From Chlorokybus atmophyticus (lineage: Eukaryota > Plantae > Mesostigma and Chlorokybus algae): a stretch of DNA of 64,000 bases. The notes under the pieces were generated by a model. That model was not told the DNA's origin, ran no database searches, and was given only the letters and a program-made list of their open reading frames with translations. The stretch is taken from contig RHPI01000446.1 in NCBI GenBank assembly GCA_009103225.1, forward strand, positions 87,038 to 151,037, read 5' to 3'. The translations under genes were made by a program, and so were the position numbers. How positions within the stretch are numbered: position 1 is the first letter of the stretch; the number at the start of each line of letters is the position of its first letter. Shown piece after piece: positions 7,801 through 18,685 of the stretch.

Positions 7801-8310
<510 letters not shown>

Positions 8311-9152
8311 AGCGGCAGTTGTCCATGCCTATCACACACGCTAAGCACACGCTAAGCACACACTAGGCACACATATAGCGATCAACATGCTATGTACCGA
8401 CTACCACTACCACTACTGCCCCCCCTGTCAGACAACTGGGTGTGCATACACATATGCACACCCAGTTTCGTGCACGCACAGCACCATGCAGACACATCTT
8501 TATCGCTGCACTGCACGTCTTGTACACGTGCACACTTACACACATAAACAGTTGCGTGCACCATGCACGCAATGCTATCCACCCCGCTCCCTCGCCTCAG
8601 ACACACTTAGATAGTGCACACATCATAGCCAAGCCCTTGCCCGTGTAATTGAAGTGCCCTGGTGCGCTGAGAATGCTGTTGCTGGTGTGCACTGTGTGCT
8701 CCCTGCTCTTAAATGTTCGGAAAGCCTATGCACGCAATATTATAACATACTGGGTTGGTTGCAGCAAACAGCAATCAGCCAGCAGCAGAGGGGAGGCGAC
8801 ACTGGCCTAAGGCCATCGTGCCCCACAACACTGTTAACCAACGACGCAGCCAACTTGTAAGCAAGCAACTTAGAGCCCCTGCTAAAGCAACAACAAGCAC
8901 ACAGTTGATGCTTGGGCAAATAACATAGCGCAGTCCATATTTGCCAGCCAAACCAACGCGCGGTGTCTATGGCACACTCATCCACTAGTGTGGTCCCAGT
9001 TAAAGCCGTCCCAGCACTTCATACCGTGATATATGCACTACCCCAACCCTAGCACAAACGCTCTCAGCTACGCATACCAGAACCAGGCACTAATAATGTT
9101 TCCTATCACCTAACATGCTGCTAAATCAGCATAATGATTGCAGCTGCATTGA

Positions 9153-12100
9153 TCACGGCTCGTAACTGAGCATGGGCCCAAGCCACTTCTCGCACTCTTG
9201 CACGGGCATGCCTTTGCGGGCAGCATAGTCGTGCACTTGATCGCTTGTGATCTTACCAACAGCGAAGTACTCGGAGCATTTGTTGGCAAAGTACAGCCCG
9301 CTGACGCTGGCCGCTGGAAGCATGGCGAGGCTCTCCGTCAACTCAATGCTTGTCTGATCCTGGATGGCCATCAGGTTCCACATCGTCGTCTTCTCGGTGT
9401 GGTCCGGCTGAGACGGGTAGCCCGGTGCCGGCCTGATACCCTGCATTCCAAGACAACAACTCGTTACACGCTTGCGGCCACGTGGGCACTCATGCGCATA
9501 CACGCATGCACATACACATCCACACCTCCAGGCCATTATGACAACATGCATGTGTGAACCCTGCTGTACTGACCTGATACTTGACTTTAAGTTTGTCTTC
9601 AGCACTCAGGTTCTCATCCTTTGCATAGCCCCAATACTCCTTTCGCACAATCTCATGCAGCACTTCAGCAAACGCTTCGGCCAGCCTGTCGGCAAGGGCC
9701 TCGGCCATGATGTAGCTGAAGTCGTCGTGGGTATCCTTGAACTTCTGGATCATCTCATCCAAACCGAAGCCTGCGCTCACGGCAAACATGCCAAGGTAGT
9801 CCTTCACTCCTGAGCCCACGGGTGCAACGAAGTCCGAGAGAGCAAGATAGGGTTGCTCTGTTTCTTTCTCGCCTTGCTCCCGAAGAGTGTAGAATGTCGT
9901 AAGCACCTGGCAAGGACACATCAGAATATTTATCCACAGTATTGGAGACATTCACAGTACTGTCTGTGGGCATTACAACCTCAACGTAGCCATAATAGCC
10001 AGTGCGGTTGGGGCATGTACCTCGCTGCGTGACTCGTCTGTGTAGATGATGATGTCATCGCCATCAGAGTTAGCAGGATAGAACCCTACGATACCCCGCA
10101 GCTGAAGAAGCTTCTTGTCTACTATGTCCTTCAGCATGGCATTGGCCTCTTCAAACAACCGCTTGGCCTCAGCGCCAACTGTCTCATCGTTGAAGATCTT
10201 TGGAAACCCGCGATTCGGGTAGCGCCCTCGCAGCTGCCAAACCTGCCAACAACATGCAAGTCGAGTCAGCCTTTGTAACAGCACCACTCACACGTTGGTA
10301 ACTAGCTCGCCATCACGCAGATAACAACTGCCACGTGCCTGAAAGAAGGGGTTCCAGTCGATATCTTCAAGAACCTGCTCCAGCGGGAAGTCCGTGAGAA
10401 CTTTGTTGCCTAGGAAAGAAGGCGTCACTGGCTTGTTTTCGGGAAGCGACCAGTCAACCTTTAGATGGTTAGCGCGTGCTTTGGCAATGGGCAGGTACTT
10501 CCTGTCTTCCAAGCTAGCATAGAACTCCTGCAGCATATCTTATCAGATACTATACTTAATCACTGCACCCACACGATTGCCCAATTGAACAGACACTGCC
10601 TCATGCAAGCTGTCACGGTGCTGCATATGCTCCACATGATTGCCCAGCAGGGTAGCCCATAACGCATTGACTACCTACCTCGCGCATCTCTGCATAGGTG
10701 TCCGCAATATCTGCATTGAACTCCTCCTTTTTGTTCGGGTCAAGCAGACTTTGAACAACAGTGACGCTGCGGGAGGCATCCAGCACATGCACCGCCGGGC
10801 CGCTGTACTGAGGTGCGATCTTCACCGCCGTGTGCATCTTGCTGGTTGTTGCACCGCCAATCAACAAGGGAATCTTCAAGCCCTGCTTCTCCATCTCGCG
10901 GGCGACGTGTACCATCTCATCAAGCGATGGCGTGATCAGACCGCTCAAGCCAATAACATCAGCCTTGTGCTCCTTGGCCGCAGCCAATATTTTGTCACAG
11001 GGTGTCATGACGCCCAGATCAATAACCTGTGAGCAAAAACTCACATCAGTGTCCGCATGTGTTTGCAGTAAACCAAGTGCTTTGTGCACTCATGTGTTTG
11101 AGCGAATGCACAATGCATTTAATATGCTCTTGTCACGCATTATCATGCAAAACACCCTCGTCCATGGCACAATAGGCACCTTGTAGTTGTTGCATCCAAG
11201 CACGACAGCCACGATGTTCTTGCCGATATCGTGAACGTCGCCCTTGACCGTGGCAATGACCATGACGCCCGCGTTGCTCTCTTTTTCCTCTGCCGCGTCT
11301 GGGTTCGCCAACCTTGCGAGGCGTTTCTCTTCCTCCATGAAGGGTATCAGGTGGGCGACTGCCCGCTTCATGACGCGAGCTGACTTGATAACCTGGGGCA
11401 AGAACATCTTGCCTGCCCCAAACAGGTCGCCAACGATGTTCATGCCATCCATGAGAGGGCCCTCAATGATATGCAACGGACGCACGTAGCGACCGCCAGC
11501 ACGGGCCTCCTCAGTGTCCCGCACAACGAACTCATCAATGCCCTTCACGAGCGCATGCTCAATGCGTTTCTCAACAGGCTCATCCCGCCACGACTTGACA
11601 GCTAAATTTTGCAAACACAAGGGGTTGATGGTACAGCCACTGGTAAGAAAGCTCCTCCATGACCACATGGACAGCATGCAGGTGGTCTAGCGGCAAACAA
11701 AGACTTACCAACTGCTGCTTGGCTTGCTGGCTTGTTCCTTGCGTCCAGCTGTGCAGCAAACTCCAGCATGCGCTCGGTGGCATCATCGCAGCGGTTCAAA
11801 AGAACGTCCTCGACATGCTCAAGGAGGTCTTTGGGGATTTTATGGTATTCATCTGCTTTGACCTGGGCTGTGTTGACAATGCCCATGTCCATGCCATGTA
11901 GGCATGCATGATACAGGAAAGCACTGTGGAAGGCCCGCCTCACAACATCATTCCCACGGAAAGAGAAGGCAATGTTTGAGACACCACCGCTGATCTTGGC
12001 TCCCGGGCACATGCGCTTGATCTCACGGACAGACCTGCCAAAGACACACAGTGGATGAGCTAGCTTCTCATACATAAGCTTTAGCGCGCTTGCGTATTAA

Positions 12101-15100
12101 ACTTTGAGCAAGTAAGAGAAATGCAGCAGAGAAACTACATGCGCTACCATGACGCCAGTCATGTCAAATTTGCACCCCACCTGATGAAATCAATGGCATA
12201 GTTTGCATGTTCTGCCATCCCAGTGCCAATGGTCAAGATGTTGGGGTCAAAGATGATGTCGTCGGGGACAAAGTCAATCTCCTCAACCAGCAGCTTGTAT
12301 GCCCGCTGGCAGATGCGCACCTTCTCCTCAAATGTGGCAGCTGCAAACAGGAAGCATTTGAACTCACCCATTAACATGCACACGAACACATCCAATGATC
12401 AAGTACCAGCAAACAAACTCACCTTGCCCCTGCTCGTCAAATGCCATAACCACAACGGCAGCGCCATGCCGCTTGACTATGGATGCCTGCTTGAGAAACT
12501 CGGCCTCACCGCCCTTCAGGGAGATAGAGTTCACAATGCATTTGCCCTGGCTGCATCTGAGCCCCGCCTCCACAACATGGAATTTTGAAGAATCAATCAT
12601 GAAAGGGACCTTGGAGGCCTCAGGCTCAGAGACCAACAGGTTCACAAACTTGGTCATGGCAGAGACGCCATCAATCAGCCCGTCATCCATGTTGATGTCA
12701 ATGACGTCAGCTCCAGCAGCAACCTATCGATGCATGAAACTCAGGTACTGCGCTAGTGCACAGGACTGACTGCATTGCATGAGCAATAAACGCAGTACAT
12801 ACCAATACATCCAGCAGTACCTGCTTGAGAGCGATGTCAAGGGCCTTATCCATTTTGCCATCAATGATGGCTTTCTTGAAGATCGACGAGCCTGCCACAT
12901 TGCAACGCTCGCCAATACACACAAAGGTGTCCCTGTACGTGCTGTAGTCTGTCCCAGGATTGTAAATCAGTGGCTCCAGCCCACTCAACCGCAGTCGGGG
13001 TTCTATGACTGGGAGTTTACGCGGAGGATACTGCGCCGCCAACTCTGCCATTGCCTTGATATGATCAGGGGTAGTGCCACAGCAACCACCCAAAGCATTC
13101 AGGATGCCAGCCTCAAAAAATGGGCGTATCTGCTCCGCCATCTCTGCTGGCTTTTCATCATAGCCGCCCATAGCATTGGGCAGGCCAGCATTGGGATAGC
13201 AGAAAACGTGCGTATCGGCAACCTCACTGAGTCTCTCCACATACTTCTGCATGTCCTTGGCTCCTAGTGCACAGTTGAGACCCACTGCCAAGGGCTTTGC
13301 ATGGTTGATGCTTATCCAGAAAGACTCGTTGGTTTGACCACTAAGCGTTCTCCCGCTCATGTCCACAATGGTGCCACTGCAAGAAAGGCAACACTCAGCC
13401 GCACACAATATCACCAGCTGAACCACATGTCAAGCACATACCTCACAAAAATTGGCAACTCAACGCTGTGGTCCTTGAAGAACAGATCAATAGCATACAA
13501 AGCTGCCTGCCATTACGCACGCGTTAAGTTGGAAAGACAATCAACACAACCATCAGCACACAGTGACCAAGCACTGACAGAAGCACTGTCCGTGAAACTA
13601 ATTTTGCAAAGCAACCCCTTTTGACCAAACTCAAATGCTCACAAGATGTATACCGCAGTAGCAGCACAGTGAATTGTTCATACCTTGGCGTTTAGCGTGT
13701 CAAAGATAGTTTCTACCAGCAGAAGATCAACACCTCCTGCCACCAGGCCTTCAATCTGCTCATAGTACGACGTGACAATCTCATCATAGGTGCACGCTCG
13801 GAAGGCTGGGTTTTCCACTGAAGGTGAAACGCTCAGCGTCCTGTTGGTGGGACCAATCGCGCCGGCCACAAACCGCGGCTTGTCAGGAGTCTGTCGCGTG
13901 AAGTCATCTACTGCTCGTCTTGCTACCTCTGCTGCTTTCTTGTTGATCAGCAAGACCTCCTCCCGAGCTTGCAGCTCGTAGTCAGCCTGTGATATGGATG
14001 TAGCATTGAACGTGTTGGTCTCGATGATGTCAGCGCCTGCAGCCAAGTACTCGCGGTGTATCGCTTCAATGATGTCCGGTCGTGTGATGACCAGCACATC
14101 ATTGTCGCCTTTGAGATCGTGCGTGTGCTTCGCGTAACGTTCGCCTCGGAAGTCGTCTTCCGTGAGCTTGTAACGCTGGATCATAGTGCCCATCGCTCCA
14201 TCAATGATCATCACCCTTTCTTTCATGATGCTGCGGATGAGATCAGATTTGTCTTGAACGTTGGGAGCATCTGCACAAAATCGTCTCAGCACTAATATGA
14301 CCATAACCAAGTACCCTTAGCACAATAGTAAGCCCTGCGAGTAGCGACCATGCAGCATGTGCTGCAGTAAACTGCTGGCATGTGACGCATGCTTCAATGT
14401 ATTACCTTTTCTGAGAGGTTGCGAGGGCGGTAAAGCCTTCCTTTTGTACTCTGGCACAGGTGCTGATTTGCACAACAAGTGTTAGCAATTTGCAACGCTA
14501 GTGAACCGCTGTGGCACTTGCTAACTGGTAGGTGCAACAGCACTTACGTAGCACGGCTGGCGGCGCCAACGGGTCCTCTCCAGGGGCGTATCTGCAGACT
14601 TTGGGGGGCATCTTGGGTGCGTTCTGCTTTGCCTCCTCCTCTTTCTTCTTCTCTGCTTGCTGGTTGATGTAATCCAGCATACGCTCTGTAGAGTCTGGCC
14701 GTCGGTTTAGCAGCACGTCCTCCACATGCTCGAGAAGGTCTTTGGAAATCTTATGGTAGTCGTCTGCTTTAACCTGTGCTGTGTTGACAATTCCCATGTC
14801 CATGCCATTAAGGCATGCGTGATACAGGAAAGCGCTGTGGAAGGCCCGCCTCACAACATCATTGCCGCGGAAAGAGAAGGCAATGTTTGAGACACCCCCA
14901 CTGATCTTGGCTCCAGGGCACACGCGCTTAATCTCGCGGACAGACCTGCCCAGCATCAAGAAAACAGATGAGCTTACAACAACCATAAGCATGTCGCGCT
15001 GGCATGGTCAGTGACAGGCAAGATTCCATTTGCATGCAGCAGAGCTACTGCATGCAAATACCATGCAGACAAACCATATCAACATGCTAATTGAATGCAT

Positions 15101-17470
15101 GAGTTCCCACCTGATAAAATCGATGGCATAATTGGCATGTTCTGCCATACCAGTGCCAATGGTCAGAATGTTGGGGTCAAATATGATGTCCTCCGGGTAG
15201 AAGTCAATCTTTTCAACCAGCAACTGGTATGCCCGCTGGCAGATGCGCACTTTCTCCTCAAATGTGGCAGCTGCAAACAGGAAGCACTTCAACTCACCCA
15301 TTAACACGCACAAGGACACACCCAATGATTAAATACTAGCAAACAAACTCACCTTGCCCCTGCTCGTCAAATGCCATAACGACAACAGCAGCACCGTGCC
15401 GTTTGACTATTGATGCCTGCTTGAGGAACTCTGCCTCACCGCCCTTCAAGGATATAGAATTTACAATGCATTTGCCCTGGCTGCATCTGAGCCCGGCCTC
15501 TACAACATGGAACTTTGAAGAGTCGATCATGAAAGGAACCTTGGAGGCATCAGGCTCAGAGACCAACAAGTTCACAAACTTGGTCATGGCAGCGACGCCA
15601 TCAATCAGCCCGTCATCCATGTTGATGTCAATGACGTCAGCTCCAGCAGCAACCTATCGGTGCATAAAACTCGGTTCTGAGCCAGTGCACAGGACTGCAT
15701 TGCATGAGCTACAAAAGTGAACGACACATCCAGCCGAACCTGCTTGAGTGCAATGTCAAGGGCCTTATCCATCTTGCCATCGATGATGGCTTTCTTAAAG
15801 ATTGTTGAGCCTGCCACATTGCAGCGCTCACCGATACACAAAAAGGTGTCCCTGTACTTGTTGTAGTCTGTCCCAGGATTGTAGATCAGTGGCTCCAGCC
15901 CACTCAACCGCAGTCGGGGTTCTATGACTGGCAGTTTGCGTGGAGGATACCGTGACGCCAACTCTGCCATTGCCTTGATATGATCAGGGGTAGTGCCACA
16001 GCAACCACCCAAAGCATTCAGGATGCCAGCTTCAAAAAACGGCTGTATTTGCTCCGCCATCTCTGCTGGCTTTTCATCGTAGCCGCCCATAGCATTGGGC
16101 AGGCCAGCATTGGGATAGCAAAAGACGTGCGTATCGGCAACCTCACTAAGTTTCTCCACATACTTTTGCATGTCTTTGGCTCCCAATGCACAATTGAGAC
16201 CTACTGCCAGGGGCTTGGCATGGTTAATGCTTATCCAGAAAGCCTCGTTGGTTTGGCCACTGAGTGTTCTCCCGCTCATGTCCACGATGGTACCACTGCA
16301 CAGAAGAAACAACACTCAACCGCATGTAACAGAACTAGCTGATACTGAATCGCAAGCACATACCTTACAAAAATTGGCAACTCAAAGCCATGGTCCTTAC
16401 AACATAAATCGATGGCATATAGCGCTGCCTGCCGATATGCACGGGTCAAGTAAGCGGATACTCCCATCAGCACACAGCGCCGACAGACATCTTGTATAAG
16501 TTAGCTTGCGCCCAGCGGGTTCCCCAGCTACAAGGAATTGTTTTCTACTGGTAGTTCACGGCGACAAACGGCATGAATACTGACAAGCAGGCACGTAGTT
16601 TGTCGATTGCTATGGTCAGCTAAAGTCGTCAATACAAGCAATCTCTGGCACGAGACAACAACGCTCGCACGAAGTTGCCACGAAGCAGCAGCACAGTGAC
16701 CTGTCATACCTTGGCGTTTAGCGTGTCAAAGATAGTTTCTACCAGCAGAAGATCGACACCTCCTGCCACCAGGCCTTCAATCTGCTCATAGTACGACGTA
16801 ACAATCTCATCATAGGTGCACGCTCGGAATGCTGGGTTTTCCACTGAAGGTGAAACGCTCAGCGTCCTGTTGGTGGGGCCAATCGCGCCAGCTACAAACC
16901 GAGGCTTATGTGGAGTCTGTCGTGTGAAGTCATCCACTGCTCGTCTTGCCACTTCTGCAGCTGCTTTGTTGATTAATAGCACCTCCTCGCGAGCTTGCAA
17001 CTCATAGTCTGCCTGCGAGATTGATGTGGCGTTGAAGGTATTGGTCTCGATGATGTCAGCACCTGCCGCCAAGTACTCGCGGTGTATCGCTTCAATGATG
17101 TCCGGTCGTGTGATGACTAGGACATCGTTGTCACCTTTGAGATCATGCGTATGATTCGCGTAGCGCTCGCCTCGAAAATCAGCTTCCGAGAGCTTGTAAC
17201 GCTGGATCATCGTTCCCATTGCTCCATCAATAATCATGACCCTTTCTTTCATAATGCTGCGGATGAGATCGGCCTTGTTCTGAGGCGGTCGCTCAGGCTT
17301 GGCCATAACCTCTGGAGAGATGGTGCTTGGCAGTGTAGCTGTGCTAGAGCTCTTTACTTCGTCAGCGGGGGGTAACACGGGCGTGTTTTGTGTGACATCA
17401 CAGCTTCTTGCTTTCTCAGGCAAAGCTGATTGTGCATCTTGCGTGCTAAACTCATGTTTGGGAGAGGAGG
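9153..17470 (-). CDS. METH: Cobalamin-dependent methionine synthase with tandemly duplicated Hcy-binding + pterin-binding module
   Basis: Two copies of [11 protein letters not shown]...GLNCALG...[11 protein letters not shown]...IGERCNVAG...[12 protein letters not shown]...[10 protein letters not shown]...[14 protein letters not shown] (about 17300-14600 and 14260-11740), then the cap domain ([20 protein letters not shown]), B12-binding [26 protein letters not shown] and LIGGATTS, and the AdoMet domain [17 protein letters not shown]. Stop TGA at 9153-9155. Confidence 0.96.
14406..14462 (-). other. 57-nt linker exon joining METH module 1 to module 2 in frame
   Basis: Donor GTAAGT at 14547 (phase 1), acceptor CAG at 14465-14463, exon encodes [19 protein letters not shown], donor GTAAT at 14405 (phase 1), acceptor TGCAG ending at 14271, giving [16 protein letters not shown]. 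Confidence 0.8.
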
Positions 17471-17998
17471 CTGCAGACACAGTCAGAGATGAGACGCGTT
17501 ATCATCATCGTTTACAACAGCAGCAGACTATCAGCCCCGGATGACACGAGGCTCAGTCAGCACCAAACTAAAGGGAGTCACGCATTCTACAAGAACAATT
17601 GGAGTCATTGTTTCTAACAGCCCAGACACCACTGCTTGCGTCAGAGTTTCAAGCTTTGGTATGTTCAAGCAGACCCAAAAAAAAGGACAGCGACATTGGC
17701 AGAAACGACAGTCAATGAAAGCGCATTCAAGATGATAGGTGTCTACGCAAGTGTGTGGTTGCAAACCAGCACGTGTCTACGAATGGTAGCAGCCCAACTA
17801 GACAGTCGTGAAAGGAACAATCTAGTGAACCGCCTGAGGAAATGCTGCTGAACAGTAACATTGCTTGCATACACATGACAGCTGACAATGCCCATCCAAG
17901 ATACAAGGTGACTCGCGCAAGTGCATGTTTGGAGCTTATGCCTGTGGTGACTCAGCACGGTAGCTGCAGATCTTGCCGGTTTTGAACAGTCAACCCAC

Positions 17999-18074: not shown

Positions 18075-18447
18075 CACAATCAACAGCACCGCCGACTGTA
18101 CATGAGGTGGGAAGAGATTAGGTCACAACGAATGTGGCATGCAGGTCCTGACGCGTCCGCAGCAATCAGAATGCATGCAAGTCTTGCTGCTCAAAGCTCC
18201 ACTCATGCAGCTATAAACCCGCGCACCCAAGGCCCCACTTCAACTGGGCATGCTCATTAGCGCAATGCAAACAGCACGGCTGAGCTAGCAGCATGCCCAC
18301 AACTACGCAATGCCATGCGGATTCACAGACGAGGCTACCAACCGCCGTTTCAGCTAAAACACAGCATGTTCGCAAGTAATGCTAAGCTGCTGCTGCTGCT
18401 ACTGCTTGTAAGCATGCTGCCTGACGACCAGACTTCCTGAAGATCAC

Positions 18448-18685
18448 CTGTGTCAAGTGCTAAAGCGGCGCGGTCCTGAGCAACAGTCCTCTGCTGCTGC
18501 TGCGGATCCCTGCCGAAGATCCAGAAGGCGGCGGCGGCGAGGCATGCCGCAGGCACAAGCAGGGGCAGCAGCAGCGTGACCAGCAGCAGGGCGGCGGAGG
18601 CGGCGGGGAACGCCGCCAGCACCGCCACTCCAGTCAATAGCGGGCGGTACCGGCAGAACCGCCATGCGCCCCCCACGCGGTCCAT
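18448..18685 (-). CDS. Hydrophobic exon, probable first coding exon of METH (alternatively a stand-alone small membrane protein ending at 18350)
   Basis: ATG 18685 MDRVGG...LLTGVAVLAAFPAASAALLLVTLLLPLLVPAACLAAAAFWIFG; the phase-1 donor ACAG|GTGATC at 18447 matches the phase-1 acceptor CTGAC...TGCAG at 17471. Confidence 0.55.

Follow-up and report, generated by a model that had tools for sequence, protein, structure and literature searches.

Two homocysteine-folate modules precede a single cobalamin unit in the methionine synthase of Chlorokybus atmophyticus, a member of a multi-module class of algal enzymes

The cobalamin-dependent methionine synthase gene (METH) of Chlorokybus atmophyticus lies on the minus strand of a 64,000-nucleotide stretch of contig RHPI01000446.1 (assembly GCA_009103225.1, positions 87,038 to 151,037), hereafter the window, whose first letter is position 1. 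This single METH gene gives rise to one spliced mRNA, whose product has the layout [leader-Hcy-Fol]-linker-[Hcy-Fol]-cap-B12-AdoMet, in which Hcy and Fol are the homocysteine and folate (pterin) domains, B12 the cobalamin-binding domain and AdoMet the S-adenosylmethionine activation domain. The protein belongs to a widespread, little-discussed class of eukaryotic algal methionine synthases of the form [Hcy-Fol]n-cap-B12-AdoMet, with n=2-4. The doubling is real, yet it is how METH normally looks in this lineage, and public annotation already includes it. The best explanation of the whole, which we hold to be fairly probable, is a single METH of this class in which both modules are working stations served by one cap-B12 domain.

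Pfam searches of the exon reading frames and of the public gene model P0440 detect PF02574 and PF00809 twice, and PF02607, PF02310 and PF02965 once each, within 9153-17480 of the minus strand. Their order is PF02574-PF00809-PF02574-PF00809-PF02607-PF02310-PF02965, which bears out the original prediction of two complete Hcy and folate modules followed by one cap/B12/AdoMet unit. At the DNA level the two Hcy-pterin stretches repeat directly, with an exon identity of 86-92% and a spacing of 2911-3026 nt. Exons of 65, 556, 301 and 160 nt are common to modules 1 and 2, and corresponding exons have the same phase. RNA joints, homology and the matching layout of modules 1 and 2 were used to build a 19-exon model. 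It has a coding sequence of 5946 nt with a continuous frame and no internal stop, contains 17 GT-AG introns and one inferred GC-AG intron, and specifies 1981 aa from the ATG at 17306, in keeping with the roughly 2,000 aa first estimated. The motifs of the cap/B12 unit (DVHDIG, SGL and the GG of LLIGGATTS) and the RPAPGY motif of the AdoMet domain, which is of the RxxxGY type, occur once each in the model, as had been claimed for DxHxxG and AdoMet; PF02965 scores E=1.8e-115 on P0440. All domains and motifs that define a cobalamin-dependent methionine synthase (EC 2.1.1.13) are present, and catalytic activity is predicted.

Evidence that the two modules are joined in one message comes from the contigs of four Chlorokybus RNA runs (X1-X4). 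These were aligned to 12950-15849, a range shorter than the repeat period that hence contains no internal repeat. The junctions 14548->14462 and 14406->14270, predicted to link the copies through an in-phase exon of 57 nt, were found exactly: every one of the four runs has contigs with these minus-strand joints, bounded by GT..AG. Two contigs, X1 rec5 (616 nt) and X3 rec14 (826 nt), extend from pterin-1 by way of the 57-nt exon to Hcy-2, and X2 rec10 (574 nt) runs from pterin-1 into the 57-nt exon. In X1 the depth at the module-joining junction is 86, against 86-120 in neighboring exons. Further joints were detected within module 1 (15650|15737 and 14943|15109) and module 2 (13505|13683 and 13376|13442), and no RNA contig of the four runs covers the introns within 12950-15849. 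The X3 and X4 transcripts have the same joints and are 1-5% different from the window, and are therefore assigned to other strains or species. A joint that appeared to go back 2900 nt and a loose end in X4 were rejected as artefacts of the shortened alignment range, in which copy-1 contigs had been aligned to copy 2; the letters of the X4 loose end read as the module-1 leader.

How much of the distribution of the architecture came to light differed with the query. A first search of a library of 1.84 billion representative sequences with the first Hcy-2 exon returned two doubled-domain proteins, namely a 925-aa Aureococcus 'methionine synthase' (Hcy-Fol-Hcy) and a dinoflagellate protein of 2076 aa in which the Hcy-Fol module occurs twice, and P0017 as query returned only the dinoflagellate family with a KR domain and single bacterial MetH. 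The true distribution was seen only with a double-module profile (alignment A1) and then with P0275 as query. The profile matched full-length proteins with five Pfam domains and two modules, such as 'mtr' of Symbiodinium natans and the 2020-aa Tara Oceans protein P0275. Green matches to P0275 include Chlorella sorokiniana, Chlorella vulgaris, Micractinium, Chlamydomonas eustigma, C. incerta, C. reinhardtii, Volvox carteri, Dunaliella, Botryococcus, Trebouxia, Ostreobium, Bryopsis (3361 aa), Pedinophyceae and Mesostigma; the others come from the diatom Epithemia, the labyrinthulomycete Mucochytrium, the pelagophyte relative Chrysophaeum and dinoflagellates. Among 124 proteins, 99 have two modules, 18 have three, one has four and six have one. 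Five of the six one-module proteins are cut-off fragments of multi-module proteins, leaving P0496 as the sole candidate for a single-module protein of the green type. Two modules are present in Mesostigma viride (Mv18138), Chlorella vulgaris, a diatom and Symbiodinium; three in C. reinhardtii (CHLRE_06g250902v5, 2453 aa), Volvox carteri ('vitamin B12 dependent methionine synthase', 2783 aa) and Dunaliella; and four in Bryopsis. Chlorokybus METH is colinear over its full length with P0275 (69% identity over 1998 aa), and is 48-53% identical over ~1600-2000 aa to P0279, P0280, P0281 and the dinoflagellate proteins P0276 and P0277.

Judged by the domain content of these proteins, green algae as a rule have two to four modules, which are also common in stramenopiles and dinoflagellates. 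The architecture is thus already known, and the original view that no described MetH has it did not survive: more than 100 database proteins carry two to four modules, P0440 itself is public, and the arrangement was noted in print. Nor is the Chlamydomonas enzyme canonical, as had been assumed, given the three modules of C. reinhardtii. A literature search for the multi-module architecture found a sole description, that of Phaeodactylum, in which an in-frame 'intron' of 2280 nt in the METH model (Phatr2 23399), covered by expressed sequence tags, codes for a further MetH and pterin domain (Bromke et al. 2015, PMC4523565). A dinoflagellate metH paper and a land-plant B12 paper make no mention of it.

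Both modules of the Chlorokybus protein appear intact. Module 1 (aa 13-650) and module 2 (aa 721-1358) align without a gap over 638 aa at 95.1% identity, with 0.49 synonymous (Ks) and 0.024 non-synonymous (Ka) substitutions per site. The resulting Ka/Ks of 0.05 compares with a value of ~0.5 expected if one module were unconstrained. Conservation was gauged against 94 canonical single-module MetH proteins, in which 147 columns are at least 97% conserved; W654 falls outside the module fragments, leaving 146 comparable columns. Each module departs at only three of these. L374A and S566A are common to both modules, while the private changes, A635I in module 1 and A230S in module 2, are conservative. 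The folate-site motifs reported in both copies are accordingly confirmed, as the conserved columns of the Fol region are all kept apart from L374A, S566A and, in module 1 only, A635I. The same holds for the Zn-ligand cysteines of the GLNC and GGCC motifs (C256/C319/C320 in module 1, C964/C1027/C1028 in module 2), which correspond in the alignment to C247/C310/C311 of an E. coli-like MetH. Set against the diverged X3 transcripts, the window shows 21 synonymous and two non-synonymous changes, with 7 to 0 in the catalytic part of module 1. Taken together, the sequence comparisons place both modules under strong purifying selection, with all catalytic residues kept. Ks is uneven along the module (0.12-1.09), which fits old, patchy gene conversion. 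An intron-by-intron comparison of the modules carries little information, as its gap scoring gave ~75% identity even for shuffled sequence; only introns 3 (85%) and 4 (89%) stand out.

The repeats evolve within species. A maximum-likelihood tree was built for 71 modules of 26 taxa; in every one of these taxa, a protein's modules are more closely related to one another than to any other module. Modules 1 and 2 of Chlorokybus form a clade with 100% support in the Shimodaira-Hasegawa-like approximate likelihood ratio test, Chlorokybus adjoins Mesostigma, and the taxa follow accepted relationships. Identity between modules of one protein is 100% in P0275, 98-100% in many species, 95% in Chlorokybus and 69% in P0280 and P0281; in these last two and in the dinoflagellate KR family the modules group by position. 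Because modules cluster by species, span this range of identity and vary in copy number from two to four, the pattern points to concerted evolution, by gene conversion and unequal crossing-over, as what keeps modules alike within species. Many independent recent duplications were rejected as unparsimonious, since the species-wise clustering in 26 of 26 taxa comes with the same boundaries and P0280, P0281 and the KR family show an older, position-wise clustering.

The linker between the modules is itself part of the repeated design. In green algae it comprises 76-98 aa rich in Pro, Ala, Lys and Glu (160 aa in Mesostigma, with a CBM-like insert) and in Chlorokybus ~70 aa, including the peptide APPAVLPPVPEYK; the last module-1 exon ends in its Lys/Glu/Pro-rich part. 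A motif, DPLAPxxxLPPVPEYK, was seen in the linkers of Chlorokybus, Chlorella, Volvox, Dunaliella, Bryopsis and Botryococcus. The 57-nt exon encodes the PVPEYK end of the Chlorokybus motif, the C-terminal part of LPPVPEYK, and is therefore an ancient part of the repeat unit and not a recent patch. Proteins of Chlorella, Micractinium and Bryopsis start with the same motif or a partial copy, and in Chlorokybus the open frame that precedes the ATG at 17306 contains a degenerate version, so that the repeat unit consists of leader motif, Hcy and Fol. An AlphaFold2 model of Fol1-linker-Hcy2 from a 45-sequence alignment has a predicted template modelling score (pTM) of 0.85 and gives the motif a predicted local distance difference test score of 72-77, between two stretches below 50, and no regular secondary structure. 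On this model the motif may be an extended segment that docks, with a flexible tether on either side.

The frame of the first exon is open upstream of the ATG at 17306 to ~17471. The first exon of module 2 opens at 14270 with an out-of-frame ATG, which in the alignment falls on the start of module 1 (ATG GCC AAG). It looks like the relic of an ancestral start codon that is now plain sequence after a splice acceptor.

MetH catalysis relies on large swings of a single cobalamin domain. Goulding, Postigo and Matthews reportedly found in 1997 that an isolated E. coli fragment, MetH(2-649), carries out both methyl transfers with exogenous cobalamin; if so, an Hcy-Fol module need not covalently adjoin the B12 domain. 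Full-length MetH structures are reported to show large domain rearrangements around the cobalamin cofactor (PMC10567725). Against this background, the single cap-B12 domain of the Chlorokybus enzyme would sit on its usual flexible tether after the last Fol barrel and would be able to dock on either module, at its Fol as well as its Hcy barrel. The ~70-aa linker, with its conserved and probably docked DPLAPxxxLPPVPEYK segment, would bring module 1 within reach. More docking sites per bound cobalamin could then allow more productive encounters, and hence more turnover per scarce B12 molecule. We infer that both modules are working catalytic stations. A broader proposal, that multi-module METH is a B12-economy adaptation in which one cobalamin serves two to four stations made interchangeable by concerted evolution, the motif sets reach and copy number tunes turnover in algae obliged to scavenge the vitamin, is put forward as a tentative and rather doubtful idea.

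Several points weigh against two stations served by one cap-B12 domain. The reach of the B12 domain to module 1 is a hypothesis, and the B12-economy rationale is speculation. The pTM of 0.85 may stem from a paralogous co-evolution signal and should not be taken for a real Fol1:Hcy2 interface. Gene conversion from an essential module can partly imitate purifying selection on a passenger copy. The RNA evidence consists of assembled contigs, from which uncommon isoforms are lost, so that a single-module transcript of low abundance, or translation from the internal Met in SIMKERVM, is conceivable; each contig covers part of the METH message.

The alternative that survives best, and still an unlikely one, is that the extra module is competent but served in trans, by the cobalamin of another METH, by free methylcobalamin or by a different methyl donor as in HMT/BHMT. 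Intact catalytic residues are compatible with it; so are the dinoflagellate KR-[Hcy-Fol]x2 proteins, in which double modules occur without a B12 domain in cis, and the reported activity of E. coli MetH(2-649) with exogenous cobalamin. In nearly all MetH-type members found, however, the modules are fused upstream of the B12 unit, where the tether favors reaction in cis, and the near-identity of the modules speaks against a different substrate.

Next in rank, and also unlikely, is a non-catalytic role for the extra module, such as buffering or channelling of folate polyglutamates or homocysteine, allosteric regulation or scaffolding. Here the conserved linker motif would find a ready use, and the AMPK1_CBM-like domain of Mesostigma and the hydrophobic N-termini of many green METH proteins hint at localization or regulation. 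A role in binding alone would nevertheless not oblige each module to retain its full set of catalytic residues, Zn cysteines among them, and there is no sub-functional divergence between modules that are 95% identical here and 98-100% in many species.

It is improbable that the extra module is a nearly neutral passenger of unequal crossing-over that survives unbroken solely because the essential module repeatedly converts it. Species-wise clustering and copy numbers of two to four do show frequent recombination between the repeats, and the uneven Ks (0.12-1.09) is in line with it. Yet a Ks of 0.49 shows long spells without conversion in Chlorokybus while Ka/Ks is 0.05, the between-strain changes in module 1 are synonymous, and the multi-module state is kept in three eukaryotic supergroups with one candidate single-module green-type protein (P0496). 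An assembly duplication or a truncated Hcy-Fol paralogue adjoining a normal METH, to which the Met just inside module 2 (SIMKERVM) and the out-of-frame ATG at 14270 might lend color, is hardly credible: copy-specific RNA contigs bridge the modules via the 57-nt exon in four runs, which rules out an artefact or two adjacent genes, and the same architecture recurs in independent genomes and transcriptomes.

The gene had been modelled before. P0440 (jgi/Chlat1/1883/Chrsp145S02203, Chlorokybus atmophyticus) has 2128 aa and both modules by Pfam. It aligns to the 19-exon model with no mismatches, three gaps from alternative splice sites and 134 extra N-terminal residues. At intron 12724-12820 the model donor (12820) parallels the RNA-supported module-1 donor, and P0440 uses 12802, adding 6 aa. 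The GC-AG intron 10338..10243, inferred from homology only, yields the consensus DWNPFFQVWQLRG where P0440 has a 12-aa insertion, and at the B12-to-activation junction (intron 10539-10674) the two differ by 5 aa. The RNA alignment covered junctions down to 12950, so that these splice choices rest on parallel structure and homology. The coordinates of all parts are collected in the table.

Table. Parts of the Chlorokybus atmophyticus METH gene in window coordinates.
Feature	Coordinates	Strand	Basis and remarks
Upstream exon of public model	18446..18685	-	~80 aa, two hydrophobic stretches (MDRVGGAWRF...FWIFGRDPQQQQ...)
Leader and module 1 (Hcy-1, pterin-1)	14548..17471	-	Pfam PF02574 and PF00809, RNA joints, gene model
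Module 1 exons	17306(ATG)-16710, 16428-16364, 16295-15740, 15653-15353, 15270-15111, 14945-14548	-	
57-nt linker exon, phase 1-1	14406..14462	-	Both flanking GT..AG joints in four RNA runs
Module 2 (Hcy-2, pterin-2)	11709..14270	-	Pfam, RNA joints, 95.1% aa identity to module 1
Module 2 exons	14270-13684, 13506-13442, 13376-12821, 12723-12423, 12340-12181, 12034-11709	-	
Cap (PF02607) and B12-binding (PF02310)	10675..11601	-	Exons 11601-11180, 11026-10675; Pfam and model
AdoMet activation domain (PF02965)	9153..10538	-	Exons 10538-10339, 10242-10021, 9906-9574, 9440-9153 (including stop)

The upstream exon of the public model is present in the window, as a tblastn search with aa 1-80 of P0440 gives 98.8% identity, and all sampled words of it occur in RNA run X1; its joining to ~17471 is a candidate splice, proposed by the public model only. 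Hydrophobic N-terminal segments also occur in METH of Volvox carteri, Chlamydomonas incerta, C. eustigma, Nannochloris and Pedinophyceae, and a membrane-anchored METH may be a lineage feature. Just downstream of the METH stop, the interval 8000-8600 has a GC skew of -0.73 and an AT skew of -0.55, and its translated frames look repetitive and rich in His, Thr and Cys.

The textbook MetH, with one Hcy, one Fol, one B12 and one AdoMet domain, misdescribes the enzyme of most green algae, including Chlamydomonas and Volvox, as well as many stramenopiles and dinoflagellates. This departure seems almost absent from the searchable literature, where the manner in which one B12 domain might serve several modules is seemingly undiscussed beyond one passing remark. 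Enzymes with two to four docking platforms per cobalamin are ready-made material for studies of conformational sampling, and they may bear on the use of B12 by B12-limited phytoplankton. In Chlorokybus the divergence of the two modules (Ks 0.49) suffices to reveal selection on each, which makes the alga a useful case.

Compared with known systems, Chlorokybus METH has the five Pfam domains, the Zn Cys3 site, the DxHxxG/SxL/GG motifs and the RxxxGY motif in common with canonical MetH, as in E. coli MetH and human MTR, and single-module MetH proteins are ~50-58% identical to each of its modules. It differs from them in an extra Hcy-Fol module on the N-terminal side, the ~70-aa linker and a longer N-terminal leader. 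Another known system is the dinoflagellate KR-[Hcy-Fol]x2 family (P0017, P0159 of Polarella glacialis, P0164, P0283), whose two tandem Hcy-Fol modules nest in the dinoflagellate MetH clade. These proteins have a KR domain (PF08659) at the N-terminus and lack the cap, B12 and activation domains, and their modules are 40-53% identical and grouped by position; Chlorokybus METH has PF02607, PF02310 and PF02965 but no PF08659, and is not a member. The KR family, whose proteins have ~2000 aa, also covers P0156-P0168.

The locus in Aureococcus anophagefferens (GCA_021029115.1; KAH8083471.1 and two neighboring gene models) is alike in plan: a single strand carries Hcy-Fol modules in tandem and after them one cap-B12-activation unit. 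In contrast with Chlorokybus it has three modules, ~49% identity and another leader motif (VFDWEKNY...PQTEPPLPMTK), repeated before each module. Annotated as three genes of 925, 330 and 914 aa (L001:5400-13900, JAFCAG010000019.1), it is probably one mis-split triple-module METH.

The closest counterparts are other multi-module METH proteins. Relative to these the Chlorokybus pair is among the more diverged (95% aa identity and Ks 0.49, against 98-100% in many species), and the gene contains many introns and a distinct linker exon of 57 nt. The Mesostigma viride protein (P0448) has an AMPK1_CBM-type domain (glycogen/starch-binding, PF16561) in the leader and again in the linker (aa ~814-879), so that its repeat unit includes the carbohydrate-binding module; Chlorokybus is without this insert. 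With the green-algal multi-module METH as a whole, Chlorokybus shares the [Hcy-Fol]n-cap-B12-AdoMet order, colinearity at 67-73% identity and the linker motif.

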